A DNA stretch of 62,978 bases, filler included, from Hyphochytrium catenoides (taxonomy: Eukaryota; Protista; Hyphochytriomycota), in NCBI GenBank assembly GCA_900088475.1. It is 9 parts of 9 records of this genome, joined end to end, with 100 filler letters (N's around TTAATTAATTAA, not from the genome) between each part and the next. Parts side by side here need not be neighbours in the genome. Positions count along the whole stretch, not along the records: positions 50,956 to 58,054 come from FLMG01002500.1; 8 more parts are not named here. One strand, given 5' to 3'. Shown piece by piece: positions 50,054 through 58,054 of this stretch. Made by a program: the position numbers and the translations under genes. Under the pieces are notes generated by a model. That model had not been told where the DNA came from. It made no database searches and saw nothing but the letters and a program-made list of their open reading frames with translations. The first letter of the stretch is position 1; each line of letters starts with the position of its first letter.

Positions 50054-51922
50054 CTTTTCTCTTTTGGCAGTCAGAGCTTCATAGAGACGCGAACCACCAG
50101 CCGGCCCCGCGGTGAGAGACGAGGGGAGAGGCGAGAGAGAGAGAGAGAGTCTCTCTTTATCTTCTGAAGGCAAGCGGCCGGCTTTGCCCAGAGAGAAAGA
50201 AAAGATGTGTGGAAAGAGGAGACGCGGCCAGGGTTTGAGGTTCCAGTGGCGCAGCGCCGTTCACTTCACTCTTTCTAGCTGTCTTTCTCTGTCTCTTTCT
50301 TCATCTGTCTCTCTGGTTTTTCTCTCTCTGTCTCTCTTTCTCTCTCTCTCCATAACTCTGTCTCACATCTTCCCCCTGACTCTGTCTCTCTCTCTGTCTC
50401 CTACTCCTAAGCCCATCGGGACTCTTCCTTCCATTTTTCAAGCCTCTGTCTTGACAGCACAACACTGATTTATCGTAGATTAGCGTGTCTCTGTCTCTCT
50501 CCCTCCCAATGTCTCTTCGCAAGTGCAGTATCCAAACCTATTATTACTCTTTCTCGGTCACCTAGCTCTTATTTACTTTCGAATCATATCTCTAACCCTC
50601 TGTCTCTCAGGTCTGGCGAAATACATTCAGAATGGATCTGGTGATTGTCAGCTTGATTCGGCAACATCATATTCACTCATCCTGAATGAGGATACCGAAA
50701 ATACTTCTGGAGGAGTTCTGAGAGGCGCTGTTGTTCACACTTTGTTCTGATGGATTCTTGGCTCCTCTGCCAGCGATGATGAAGCTTCAGAATGGACAGA
50801 GCAGCAGCAGCAGCAGCAGCAGGTGACAGGGGGGAGAGAGAGAGAGAGAGAGAGANNNNNNNNNNNNNNNNNNNNNNNNNNNNNNNNNNNNNNNNNNNNT
50901 TAATTAATTAANNNNNNNNNNNNNNNNNNNNNNNNNNNNNNNNNNNNNNNNNNNNTTGGAGGAGGACATGAACCGCTTGTCACTAAGAAGAGCTTATTAA
51001 AGAAGTCCTTTCTACTCGATAGATTTTTGCTCGCAAGCATCTGGGTCGTGGCAATGTGACCTGCGTGGGGATGAATACGTACCCTTACCAGCTGCTTCTT
51101 GGTCTTCTTCCTCCTTCTTGTCTATGTCTTTCTTTGACTTCTCATCTCTGAATGGTTCTTCTTCTCTTGACCGGCCTCGCATCTTCTGTTGCCAAACAAA
51201 ATGTGGAGGCTGGCTCCGGGTTCTATGATAAGAACTAGCTATAGGAGCGATTTGAGTCCATCATTTCAAAGAGATCAGATATCATCACTCGCATTGCCGT
51301 CCATACCAAGAACTAGATGCGATTGTTGAAGAAGGGTGGTGATGATGGGAAAGGATGAAATAGTTAGACTACACGGCCCGCTTCATATTGAGTGGGATAG
51401 TCGTCTCAGTAAGGCAGCAAGAGCAAAAGCGGCAAAAGAGAGAGAAATGACAAAGTGTGCCAAGAGCTTCAGCATTGGCAGCCAGTAATCTTTTCCATGG
51501 CCGTCTTATGCCAGCGCGCCCCAGCAGCTCGACACCTTTAGCTCTCTCCAGCAAACTTTAAGGTCTGAGCGGTCCTTTCTTGAGGCAAAGCCGACCTGAT
51601 CTCCCTCATGCCACTGCTGCTGCATCCCCTTCATCTACAGCTGACTACGGTTGGCCTATTTGGGGTGGACTCTCTCCACAAGTAGTAGGCAGCCCACCTT
51701 GCTCCAAACTCTGTGACTCTCTCGCTCTCTCCCTCACTCCCCACAGTCTTACATCCGTGCGCCCCACTCTCTCACAATCTTTCTCGGGCTCTCTTTCTCA
51801 ATCTCTCTCCCTCGTATCGCCCTCCCTATCTCTGCCGCAATCACTTTCTCCTTTCCTCGTTATCTCTCTCCCGCTCTCCTCTTCTTTTGCTCTTCCTCCC
51901 TTTAGAATGATGATGTTTATCT

Positions 51923-52433
51923 GCGGATGTAACACTCCGGGTCTCACTTGTAGTTGCCACGCGTCTCTCTTAAAGCTTATAAAACCGTTCTTCCTCTATT
52001 ACGATCCTCCCTCTATTCCTCTTCTTTGTTCCTCAATACTCTTGTCACACTCTCTTCCAGTTCGTGTCCGGTGTCGTTTTAGGGTCGTTCTCTTGGTTCT
52101 CCCTATGACGGATCATTCGCTGCCTTTGCTCTGTGTGCAAATGCATTCATGCCTCAAAGAACGAGAGGGGCTCAAAGAGAAAGAGAGAGAGAGAGTTCAG
52201 AGGTCCTCAGCGGCACTATTTCCTTAGCACTTGTTTCTTTATTCTCTCGTTCGCACTATTTGAGCGTTCCAGATGCACGCTAGCCTAGCACCGACGATCT
52301 ATACTTAGCGACCCTGGCAGTCAAGACTTCCACGCCTTGCTAAAGCCAAGCAGACTTTTGTGATTGACAGCCTAGGCAAAAGGCAGCAGCCATGAAGAGA
52401 ACTATGTCGTTAGACTGGCAACTTTTCTAGTAG
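51923..52433 (+). repeat. Diverged repeat, inverted copy of about 57600-58054
   Basis: GCGGATGTAACACTCCGGGTCTC...CTTGTCACACTCT at 51923-52066 matches the reverse complement of 57911-58054; two further collinear blocks (AGAGGTCCTCAGC; TTCCAGATGCA...GGCAGCAGCCATGAAGAGAAC...GTTAGACTGGCAA). Confidence 0.85.
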
Positions 52434-53821
52434 GCGATCTCTCTCCTCTCTCTCCCGCTCCTCGTCTCCCTTTCTCTCTCTTTCTCTTCTCCTCTTCTCG
52501 ATGTCTCTAATACATCTTTTGTTACTCTCTCGCCTGCCTTTGAGGGCCTTCTCGCTTTTCTTCTAACTCCCACCTCTGCTTATTATTTATTTATCTCAAA
52601 GTCCCTGTTACTTTCTCTTCACTCTCTCTTTTCACTTGTCTCTCTCCCTCTCTTCCTGCTCGTCTGGTGTGTCTCTCCCCCTCTCCCTTCCCATGTCTCC
52701 CGCTTTACTTATGGCTGCCTCTCTCTCCGCCTTCTTCATTCCTCTTGGCACGCTCTCTCTTGTGCTCCCGCTAACTCTCCAATCCTTTTTCCTCCTCCGA
52801 CAAGATGTCCGTTCCTCCTCTTTTCTCTCTCTCAGCAGGATGCTTTCCTCAGAATACCGGTTATGAATTAGCGTCCCAGTCGAACACAACTAGCTCAGCT
52901 CAACTCCTTTCTATGGCAGAGTGATTTAGAGGCAAGAGCGAGAGTCATAATATTTGAACCAGAGTGTCTCTGACTGTATGTTGATGTTGGTTGACTGCGG
53001 TTGATTGACTGAAGGACACGACGCCACTCCAGCCTGGCAAGACGAAGAAGTAGCCGTACCAAGTTGAATCGTCATCAGTTCCTTCTCCTCTGTGGCCGCT
53101 TCTAAGAAGTTTAAACGAGGGACTTTTTACCTCGCTTCCTAACCATAAAAGCCGAGCTTCTCTTCTAGAATCTACCACGAGCGACAAGACATGTGTGTAC
53201 TACTTGTGCTGGCTGCTGGCAGCGAAGTGGTCAGAACCCGTCCCGTGGCTGTCGAGCCCATTCGTCTTGTCGAGCGAGATAGACCTTTCTTGTCATGATC
53301 CTTACTCTTCTTCTTCTCTCGCATTTGTCCCACCGTGCTATTACGTCTTTGTAGCGTTTAGAGCCTCTTGGAATGCTTCCCGAGACTCGTCTCTCTTGTG
53401 CGCTAATGGTAGGCGGCACAGAGGAAGCCTAGGAAAGAACACTCTAGCGCTAACCGAATTATAAGTATCAGCTTTCCTTTCCCTTGTGGCTTGAGCGTCA
53501 ACGTTTACCTAGTTCTGAGTCGGTTCTCTATCACCTCATTGCTCCTCTTTTTATTGGCTTTCCCTTCTATAGCACCCTTCCTCTCTCATGTCTCGTGTAT
53601 ACGTTTCTATAACAATTCCATATTCGTCAATCCCTTTCTTATGCTAAATGCTGTCCCTCTTTGTCACTTCGTTCAATCTTCATTGTTCACAGTGTAACAT
53701 TATAATATGAGAAGCTGCTGCAGCTCTCGAGAAAGTGTGAAAAAGAAGGTGTCCTATCTGTACCTTGGCTGGCCAGGCCTCAGTTCAGACAAGCACCACG
53801 CAGAGGAAGACTTGCGGGAAC

Positions 53822-56734
53822 GGTGGAATATCCAGGGAGGGATATTAGGTTTTCCTGGCGCGGGTGTAGGATGGGGCTGACCTCCTACGTCACTTTCAGA
53901 TTTCCTCCGCCGTCAGCCTCAGCCTCTGCCGCCTGCTCAAATCTAGACACGGCGGCAACGGATAGAAGAAGCAAAGCTGACTAGACCTATGCGCTGCCGC
54001 AGAACAGTCACAGATAAAGTTCCGTTAGCTACGAGAGGCCACCAGATGGCGAGCTTCTTACAGCTGACGATCCGTCAGCGCTTACGACAGGCCAACATCT
54101 GATGCTCTCATGGTGATTCCTTTTTTTAGTAGCCTTTAGGACAGGGCAACACAGCTCGCTCCTTAACAAGGGCAGAGAGACTGTCAGGGTAGCCTTAGCC
54201 AGCAGGTTAATACACCGCTCACCCGGTTCTCTCATAGACGTGATTCCTTCGTCCGCAGCCTTTAAAGCAGGCTTAGGGTCACTGCGCTCCTTACAGGCTT
54301 TGGCCGTCACGAAGGCGAGCTACTAAACGGCGCTACGTCGTGGTACTTACGACAGACTAATACTCGATTTGCTTCATCCAGGCGTGGTCTGCCAGCCTTA
54401 AGACAGATATCTCGCGGTTCGTCAGCCTTGAGAGAGGCTAACCGACGGCTCGCTTCTTACAGAAGGCGTGGGCCGCCAGCTAAAGGCAGGCAGGCTCCTA
54501 CACGGCGCTCCGTCACGGTACTTCAGGACAGGCAATAAATGGCTCGCCTTCTCCAGGCGTGGTCCGTCAGCCTGAAGACAAGCGACCGTACCGCTCGCTT
54601 CATACGAGTTTAGTTCCGTCAGCTTACTCAAGATGGCCTCGTACACGCTCGCCTCTTCCATGGGAGGTGCGTCAGCCTAAAACAGCTAGCACAAATTTCG
54701 CCTAGTCTAGCCATAGGTCCAACTATGCCAGGCTATCGCGCTCGCAAATTCCAGGGAAAGGTCTGTCAGAAGTAACACAAGCTCACCTACGGCTCGCTTA
54801 ATACAGTTGTAGATCCAAAGAAAAGATAGGTACGGCGTTCCTCTGGCAACCGCGGAGAGCCCATTGCAATTGCTAGTCGTCTGCGCCGGCTGGAGAACCG
54901 TAGTCTGACAGACTTTGCTATACAAATCACTGCGGGGGATGTGAGCGGTACCTTTCGCCATGTTCTACTCCACGCTGGGGCTTCCTAATTGGCCCGCTAC
55001 ACACCCAAGGCGAGGGATGGCATCACTGATTGTCTACGCCTTTCGGCTGGGCGAGCTCTCCAGGTTTTTCTATTGTCGCATATTCACTCAATGGCCAACA
55101 TACAGCGCCACGGCTCCCACGTGGCGGCGCCGGCAGCTGTCGGACGGCTGGGAACTCTAAGTCTCATTAACGGTGCCATGACCGTGTTTGGGTGAAGCCC
55201 AACAACCTTGGTACATGGTAGTGGAGGGTGTCCAGCCCGGAGTCAGGCCGTGATAATCGACAATGTACAAAGAGGAAAAGGAGTTGATTGGTTTCGGCGC
55301 GGCACAGACGGTCTAAGGTTTAGAGTAGGGTGTAGCTCTACGGCCAAGAGTGGTGGGGTGTAGCTCGCCGGCGCCAGTTTGCATACCATGGATGAAGGCC
55401 TTCTCTTCCTTCTGCCACCACACCTCCTCACTGGGTCTCATCATCGTGCTCCAACACAAGGTGGAGCAGCCGCCCAGCATTACCCGTCCCGTCACGTATT
55501 GAGGAGCCCTAACCACAGCGCAATTCGGTTAGCCACCTCCTACCTCTGTTCGGGCTCTTCGGCTCAGGAAGAATGTCGAGCATTTGCACCTACCTCTCTC
55601 CGGACTCTTCGGCTCAGGAAGGATGTCGAGTACTGTTGCGCGGGGCCAGTTACACCTCTGCTATTATCATTCTGCGGATCAACCTACCGTCACGAGACAG
55701 CTCTCGGAAAGGATGTAGATGATAGCGCAGGACAGAAACAGCTTAATTGGCCTACCACGCAAAACGCTTACCTCGGGAGAGGAGCTCATCATCGCTTACG
55801 GACTTTGGGGCCCATTCAGGCGAGCGAGAGTTAGCGAGAAGAGAGCCGACAACAGTCTCACTGCAACATGACGTTTCTCAGCTCTCAGAAACAACCAGCA
55901 GCAGCCAGCGGACTCACACCAGAACGGGTGATAACTAACAATCAAGCGGGCAGGAGTCTCTCAAATATTTAACTTGGGGCACACCACACAACCCAGCGCC
56001 ACTACTACTTACTCTTTGGGGCCCAAGAGCCTCCTGGGGCACACTCACAACCCAGCAGCGCTACAACCACTCAATACTTTGGGGCCAAGAGCCTCCCTTC
56101 GCTTGACCCAGCCAGGCGGTACGGAAAGGTCCCAGCAGGCTAGTAATATCAGACGCCGTGTGACCCCCACCCAGAGGCCTCTTATACATCTTTTCCGCTC
56201 TTGTCACGGCATCCGGGAGAGCAGAAGGAAAGGTGGAATATCCAGGGAGGGATATTAGGTTTTCCTGGCGCGGGTGTAGGATGGGGCTGACCTCCTCCTA
56301 CGTCACTTTCAGATTTCCTCCGTCAGCCTCAGCCTCTACCGCCTGCTCAAATCTAGACACGGCGGCAACGGATAGAAGAAGCAAAGCTGACTAGACCTAT
56401 GCGCTGCCGCAGAACAGTCAACCGCCCGCCCACCCATCGATGCGGCTTTCTTGGACCAATGCTAGAGGTAGATGATAGTAGGTATTTAGTTATGTAGGTG
56501 AGGTGGTAAGGAGTGCGTACTTAACGCTTAGTTGTTTTTCGTTAGTTAGTGAGTTAGGACACGGCTACTACTTATAATGCGCCTGGGCCAAGAGCCTCCC
56601 TTCGCTTGACCCAGCCAGGCGGTACGGAAAGGTCCCAGCAGGCTAGTAATATCAGACGCCGTGTGACCCCCACCCAGAGGCTTCTTATACATCTTTTCCG
56701 CTCTTGTCACGGCATCCGGGAGAGCAGAAGGAAA
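53822..56734 (+). mobile_element. Non-autonomous split-direct-repeat element (PAT/Ngaro/TOC1-like, tyrosine-recombinase retrotransposon order)
   Basis: A1 53822-54010 matches A2 56232-56420 (189 bp); B1 56082-56231 matches B2 56585-56734 (150 bp, one mismatch); order A1...B1A2..B2; no TSD; no RT or YR ORF. Confidence 0.8.
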
Positions 56735-57482
56735 ACGCGCAAGTAGCAAAGGGTCTTCTACTTCAGAAAGAAGTTTATTAACTGAGGTATAGAGGGTAAG
56801 AGGGCGTCTCCCTTGCGAGAGAGTCAGTCTACCTGAGAAATGCAAAGATAAACGAGTAACATGCAAGAGAAGTAGTGTCCACAGGCTATTCTATTAACAT
56901 GCAAAGAGAAAGAGAGAAGAAAGGGAAAAGGAAGAGAGCATCCTTCGTCAGAGCCATTCGTTGCCGACTTTAGTCGGGACTACCCGCCCTGAGAAGAGTA
57001 CTCTCAAAAAGGAGAGGCCACCTCCCATACACCGGTGGTCGATCCGTGTCCAGTGTGCAATCAGCAGGTGGTTAGCAGCCGTCAGAGGAGATATACATAT
57101 AACAGATAGAGCGGAAGAGAAGAGAAGGGGAGAGACAACCAGACAAACAGGAAGAGAGGCAGAGAGGAAGGTGAAAAGTGAGAGTGAAGAGAAAGTAACA
57201 GTGAGTTTGGGAGAAAATAATAAGCAGAGGTGGGAGATAGAAGAAAAGCGAGAAAGTCCCCAAAGGCAGGCGAAAGAGTAACGACAGAAAAGCAGATTGA
57301 GAGAGGAAGATTATATAAGTTCTGAAAGAAAGACCAGAAGAGAGAGTTGGAGAGAACAAAAAAAAAGGGACAGGTGGAACTGACCAAATGACCAAATAGA
57401 GAAGAAAGGCAGAGTACTAGTGCAAACTCTAAAAGAAGAGGTATTAGAGATATGGAGAAGAGGGGAAGAGAAAGAGAGAGAA

Positions 57483-57537
<55 letters not shown>

Positions 57538-57556
57538 AAGAGAGAGGGAGAGAGAA

Positions 57557-57590
<34 letters not shown>

Positions 57591-57599
57591 TGAGAGAGA

Positions 57600-58054
57600 C
57601 TACTAGACACTTTTGCCAGTCTAACTATCTCGTTCTCTTCATGGCTGCTGCCTAACCAGAAAAGACTGCTTGGCTTTGGCAGTGCAAGGAGGTCCTGAGC
57701 GCCAGCGTTGCTAAGTAGAGGTCGCCATGGTAGCCTAGCCTGCATCTGGAAAGTTCAAATGATGCAAAAGAGAGATGAAAGAATTAATGTTAATGAAGTA
57801 GTAGTGCTGCTGAGGACCTCTGCTGAATGCAACTGCTGCACATGGAGGAAAGGCAGAGAATGATTCCTCATAGAGAGAACCAAGAGAGTTAGTGTAACAA
57901 AAAGACAGGGCACGGACTGGGAAAGAGTGTGACAAGATTGTTGAGGAACAAAGAAGAGGAATAGAGGGAGGATCGTAGTAGAGGAAGAGCGACCCCATAA
58001 GCTTTAAGAGAGACGCGTGGCAACTACAGGAGAGACCCGGAGTGTTACATCCGC
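57600..58054 (-). repeat. Second (inverted) copy of the 51923-52433 repeat, cut by the contig end
   Basis: See 51923-52433; also visible in the ORF track as the shared peptide FLYYDPPSIPLLCSS. Confidence 0.85.

Follow-up and report, generated by a model that had tools for sequence, protein, structure and literature searches.

Results

The locus at 53822-56734 holds two repeat sequences, A and B, each present twice and arranged around a long and a short interior segment (Table 1). It lies in the 7.1-kb piece to which the analysis was confined (positions 50956-58054); this piece belongs to a window, the whole stretch of DNA, of 62,978 nucleotides from Hyphochytrium catenoides. The piece has a GC content of about 50% and is mildly depleted in CpG, and a single copy of the element is visible when the piece is compared with itself by blastn. 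The B copies are gathered on one side: one end of the element reads BAB, and the other consists of A1 followed by the long interior.

Table 1. Coordinates of the element, its parts and the adjoining pentamer
Feature	Position	Strand	Length	Description	Evidence
Whole element	53822-56734	+	2913 bp	A1 - I1 - B1 A2 - I2 - B2	
A1, left terminal repeat	53822-54010	+	189 bp	starts GGTGGAAT	self-comparison, pairwise alignment
I1, long interior	54011-56081	+	2071 bp	non-coding	
B1, internal copy of right terminal repeat	56082-56231	+	150 bp	ends GAAGGAAA	
A2, internal copy of left terminal repeat	56232-56420	+	189 bp	adjoins B1	
I2, short unique segment	56421-56584	+	164 bp	T-rich	
B2, right terminal repeat	56585-56734	+	150 bp	149/150 identical to B1	
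Left flank pentamer GGAAC	53817-53821	+		first four bases are the GGAA of the B end (GGAAA); candidate crossover microhomology	

A first-pass annotation of this DNA had described split direct repeats, nearly identical between copies, in which the 189-bp left end and the 150-bp right end are joined internally as an exact B-A junction. Self-comparison and pairwise alignments reproduced every detail of that description. When A1 and A2 were aligned together with their flanks, 185 of 186 aligned bases were the same; the copies differ by one G/A substitution and by two 3-bp indels, which are opposite in sign and both lie within short triplet runs (CCT and CCG). The similarity between the A copies extends 5 nt further to the left, to 53817-53821, where GGAAC stands against GGAAA. 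In the blastn comparison of the piece against itself, 53817-54010 and 56227-56420 matched at 95.9% over 197 columns, 6 gap columns included (E = 2e-88), and B1 and B2 differed by a single C/T (E = 3e-73). Overall, the repeat pairs are about 99.4% identical. The last base of B1 is 56231 and the first of A2 is 56232, with zero bases between them, and the junction reads GAAGGAAA followed directly by GGTGGAAT. In the alignments with flanks, the left limit of the A1 similarity and the right limit of the B2 similarity both coincide with this B1/A2 junction; thus, if the element's right end is fused to its left end, the sequence of the internal B1A2 is obtained again. The repeats and their exact abutment are real, and they lie far beyond what chance would produce.

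The 5' limit of B is less sharp. A 62-bp tandem pair at 55975-56096 (82% matches) runs into B1, its second copy overlapping the first 15 nt of the repeat, and over about 25 nt a weak likeness to the stretch preceding B1, and to its tandem copy, persists upstream of B2. Because of this resemblance to the 62-bp unit, B may ancestrally have extended about 25 nt further. Within A, a perfect 7-bp inverted repeat, AATATCC-N6-GGATATT, is found 6-25 nt from the start of the repeat (53827-53846 in A1, 56237-56256 in A2). It is present in both A copies and at no other site in the window, and may serve to bind a protein or to form a hairpin at the element end. A 120-nt region spanning B1A2 folded no better than shuffled sequences (z = -1.16).

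Could this arrangement have arisen through a local rearrangement or an assembly artefact, A and B having been duplicated by template switching or by mis-joined reads with no mobile element involved? There is one instance of the element, without a match in the collections searched, which evidently lack the source genome, and both A1/A2 indels fall in triplet runs, which are prone to slippage and to long-read errors. However, the copies differ by two substitutions and two indels, and this lack of identity argues against a pure duplication by the assembler. To place A on the left of I1 and B on the right of a foreign 164-bp segment that matches nothing nearby, with limits that meet exactly, would further require several precise and independent events. 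We therefore regard an artefact or a local rearrangement as quite improbable.

The nature of I2 bears on several other explanations. Smith-Waterman scores of I2 against I1 and against either flank were within the range obtained with shuffled sequences, and I2 is thus unrelated to all of them. A tandem duplication followed by a deletion was rejected because the 164-bp I2 shows no relationship to the 2071-bp I1 or to the flanks. The pseudo-LTR arrangement of Penelope-like elements was rejected in turn: there, a full copy is followed by a second, 5'-truncated tandem copy, so that everything in the short unit also belongs to the long one (PMC8969392), whereas I2 is not a subset of I1, no RT was found, and GIY-YIG was absent from the Pfam results for the piece.

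The layout is formally the same as that of two abutting units of one A…B family arranged head to tail, A1-I1-B1 (2410 bp) and A2-I2-B2 (503 bp). The units would be independent of each other and would adjoin by chance or by insertion at their own ends, and they need not be retroelements. That the shorter unit could exist alone has a parallel in Trypanosoma cruzi, where the A2-x-B2 part of VIPER is also found by itself as SIRE (PMC6681497). Against this explanation, the two units abut without an intervening base, neither has a target-site duplication (TSD), and terminal inverted repeats (TIRs), TG…CA termini and Helitron ends are all absent. Moreover, insertion at the family's own B/A junction is behaviour of the tyrosine-recombinase type, so that two separate units, which we consider unlikely, would largely collapse into a split-direct-repeat element.

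The interior is built in part of repeats. Over its 5' third (about 54030-54810), I1 is made up of roughly nine degenerate subrepeats, which are marked by CGTCAGCCT and GCTCGCTTCTTACAG and spaced by 50-175 bp; each copy of A also carries CGTCAGCCT once, at 53911 in A1 and at 56321 in A2. A 50-bp tandem pair is found further on in I1, at 55539-55630. The longest ORF of the interior measures 151-156 aa. We scanned all 90 stop-to-stop fragments of at least 45 aa in the piece against Pfam. Of these, 45 derive from the element and the sequence immediately around it; they had no match to RT, RNase H, integrase or tyrosine recombinase (YR), or gag at E up to 1, and the remaining 45 likewise yielded no transposable-element domain at this threshold. 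The matches obtained across the 90 fragments were scattered and at chance level, the best having an E-value of 0.0034. The earlier statement that the interior is devoid of an RT, RNase H or YR ORF is thus borne out. Neither Rfam (E up to 1) nor ARAGORN detected an RNA gene in the piece, and there was no tRNA-derived or other RNA module.

Since the architecture is that of autonomous elements, the locus might also be a split-direct-repeat element that was once autonomous and whose ORFs have decayed until they can no longer be recognised. Yet the repeats are still about 99.4% identical while no trace of RT, RNase H or YR is detected at E up to 1, and erosion this complete would have degraded the repeats too, unless they were homogenised. 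The interior is, in addition, made of subrepeats, and the length of 2.9 kb is far below the 6.5-10.5 kb of autonomous elements in the Ectocarpus library (PMC12477816). Such decay appears very unlikely.

The sequence CTTGCGGGAAC immediately precedes A1, and ACGCGCAAG immediately follows B2. The element itself begins with GGTGG… and ends with …GGAAA, between flanks reading …GGAAC and ACGCG…. No target-site duplication was found: the flanks have in common only the 4-nt GGAA, itself part of the junction, and direct or inverted similarity between them did not rise above that of shuffled sequences. GGAA both precedes A1 and ends B, and at the position next to A1 the flank has C as opposed to the A of the junction. 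This microhomology is limited to 4 nt, with a chance probability of about 1-2%. It would fit a circle junction recombining with a short matching target, and we treat it as only supportive of such an event. A related idea has been put forward for DIRS elements, according to which the site of integration is set by a short oligonucleotide of the circle junction, which then flanks the inserted element on both sides (PMC7192593). A palindromic target site, suggested by CTTGCG/CGCAAG and GAAGAC/GTCTTC in the flanks, was discarded, as 184 of 1000 shuffles scored at least as high.

The ends also speak against two further classes of element. An LTR derivative (TRIM, LARD or a pair of solo LTRs) was rejected because the two ends differ, one being A and the other B, with neither TG…CA termini nor a TSD; furthermore, no TGG-type primer-binding site follows A1, no purine tract precedes B, and no tRNA-like match was obtained. 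Helitrons in head-to-tail tandem, which insert between A and T and have a GC-rich hairpin ahead of their 3' CTRR, were set aside in the absence of 5' TC and 3' CTRR ends, the termini being GGTGG… and …GGAAA and the flanks …GGAAC and ACGCG….

Relatives of the element were sought in several collections. Oligonucleotides of 25-28 nt from A and B had 0 exact matches in collections of metagenomes, prokaryote genomes and viral contigs. Since the source genome is evidently absent from these collections, the blank searches do not show that the element is present in a single copy. Four 17-20-mers from A and B were absent from the part of the PMC12477816 supplementary library available as line-wrapped text, which makes for a weak test. 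At the protein level, seven ATG-started ORFs of the piece had no exact match in a collection of 15 billion proteins, and a word search of the protein collection returned no candidate for a 78-aa ORF that crosses the B1-A2 junction. When the 156-aa ORF of the interior was compared exhaustively by phmmer with 1.84 billion representative proteins, one match was obtained, a repeat protein of 5033 aa. We rejected it as a relative: its E-value of 8e-8 is reached only by summing 39 matches at 25% identity, and the match is spurious. The protein is built of repeats of about 86 aa and illustrates how repeat proteins can inflate whole-sequence E-values.

The surroundings of the element contain a second, larger repeat structure. 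A diverged inverted repeat with arms of at least 760 bp (51923-52685 versus 58054-57122, 73-88% identical) encloses a unique spacer of 4.4 kb within which the element lies; its right arm is cut by the edge of the piece. Both arms are rich in (TC)n/(GA)n and pyrimidine-rich on the outward-reading strand, and they have neither a Pfam match nor recognisable coding content. The right arm includes a (GA)n-type microsatellite of about 145 bp at 57455-57599, with a shorter, degenerate (TC)n counterpart at 52435-52508 in the left arm, and these microsatellites give rise to many low-complexity repeat families in the self-comparison. An inverted repeat reaching up to the element was considered and rejected, no such extension being found. 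The arms may represent a different dispersed repeat present in two inverted copies, a larger element with long TIRs, or a foldback; they are taken to be unrelated to the split-direct-repeat element.

Discussion

We think it likely that 53822-56734 is one complete retroelement of the DIRS order, a non-autonomous one of the split-direct-repeat type that is mobilised in trans. Two structural features support its membership of this order. The first is the layout, A1 - internal - B1 A2 - B2 with B1A2 corresponding to the joined termini; the published layout of PAT-like, Ngaro and VIPER-like elements places A1 at the 5' end, with the other three repeats grouped at the 3' end in the order B1, A2, B2 (PMC6681497, PMC8969392, PMC4157794). 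The second is the lack of a TSD: split-direct-repeat tyrosine-recombinase retrotransposons make none (PMC12278014, PMC8969392), and a TSD of 0 is given for DIRS-order entries of the Ectocarpus library (PMC12477816, Supplementary Material 3). Autonomous members encode RT/RNase H and a tyrosine recombinase. As none of these was found, the element could belong to the order only as a non-autonomous member. For such a member, the same termini would be expected in an autonomous RT-YR element of its genome, and further copies in other flanks. The first-pass annotation had read the locus as a split-direct-repeat retroelement, and this is supported in part, by a layout that is the published diagnostic one, by the missing coding capacity and by the failure of those alternatives that could be tested. 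The assignment stops short of a family, for PAT-like, Ngaro and VIPER-like elements are told apart by a methyltransferase domain and by RT and YR phylogeny (PMC4157794), that is, by protein content, and the present element encodes nothing.

Among known elements, the description of Ngaro-N1_Ec32 from Ectocarpus fits the present one apart from size. According to PMC12477816, Ngaro-N1_Ec32 has an 'A-int-BAB' split repeat, no ORFs, interior tandem repeats and a TSD of 0, all as here, and measures 7756 bp as against 2913 bp; Supplementary Material 3 of that paper classes it as non-autonomous through the similarity of its repeats to an autonomous Ngaro. VIPER/SIRE of T. cruzi, in the VIPER-like superfamily, has the same A1 … B1 A2 B2 layout, and I2 recalls the unique sequence of about 30 bp between its A2 and B2 (PMC6681497). 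The non-autonomous SIRE corresponds to the A2-B2 block of VIPER, with an A2-unique-B2 arrangement of 185 + ~30 + 220 bp compared with 189 + 164 + 150 bp in our element (PMC6681497). This likeness is one of layout; VIPER encodes gag-like, YR and RT/RH proteins and our element none, the repeat lengths differ, and nothing ties the piece to a kinetoplastid.

Autonomous PAT-like and Ngaro elements are 5-10 kb long and encode RT/RH and YR (Goodwin & Poulter 2004; PMC4157794), domains that the present element is without; PAT elements also carry a methyltransferase domain, and there is none here. In DIRS1-like elements proper, the logic is the same, an internal copy of the joined termini serving as the restoring template, and a short junction oligonucleotide is held in common with the target, comparable to the GGAA found here (PMC7192593). 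Unlike those of DIRS1-like elements proper, the repeats of the present element are direct.

TOC1 of Chlamydomonas reinhardtii is, like the present element, a non-autonomous member of the DIRS order. It is PAT-like and reportedly has a split repeat layout. Its length is about 5.7 kb and its host genome has about 64% GC, compared with about 50% in our piece. A preprint (bioRxiv 10.1101/2022.06.16.496473) counts it among the DIRS elements of Chlamydomonas, as non-autonomous and active in trans.

A replication model for split-repeat and DIRS elements has been summarised previously (PMC6681497, PMC7192593), and its steps can be projected onto this locus. Given the position of the BAB cluster on the right, the + strand would be the sense strand, and an RNA would run from inside A1 to inside B2. 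The RT of an autonomous relative, acting in trans, would copy this RNA. The internal B1A2 would serve as template and bridge, allowing the missing terminal bases to be restored and the two ends to be brought together in a B/A circle junction. A YR, likewise supplied in trans, would then recombine this junction with a chromosomal site sharing GGAA, leaving no duplication. The model also affects how the age of the insertion is to be read. The near identity of the repeats makes a recent insertion plausible. However, repeat identity is no simple clock if, as the model holds, each cycle rebuilds the terminal parts on the internal B1A2; and since only the junction-proximal outer parts would be re-copied each time, the changes that set A1 apart from A2 and B1 apart from B2 were perhaps inherited rather than acquired after insertion.

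A more ambitious interpretation of the same element is that it represents a minimal cis-template, still active today, in a lineage with uncatalogued YR retroelements, and that GGAAC on its left, as against GGAAA at the junction and the right end, preserves the trace of a strand exchange in which the 5-bp overlap contained one mismatch. We hold this to be a long shot. If true, it would provide direct sequence evidence for the integration of a circle junction by a tyrosine recombinase, and it would define the minimal cis requirements for mobilisation in trans, namely A, B and the BA bridge.

Non-autonomous split-direct-repeat elements are already known, SIRE, TOC1 and Ngaro-N1_Ec32 being examples. 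The element type is well described, and the present finding leaves existing knowledge of this kind of element unchanged. A correct call would nevertheless improve the repeat annotation of the source genome, because LTR finders miss or misclassify split-direct-repeat elements. The copy described here is short, ORF-less and nearly undiverged, and its A and B ends could serve as probes for a putative autonomous RT-YR partner. The replication model of split-repeat elements is still largely untested; owing to its small size, the element may offer a practical reporter for the steps of that model, from B1A2 bridging and the circle junction to oligonucleotide-guided integration.
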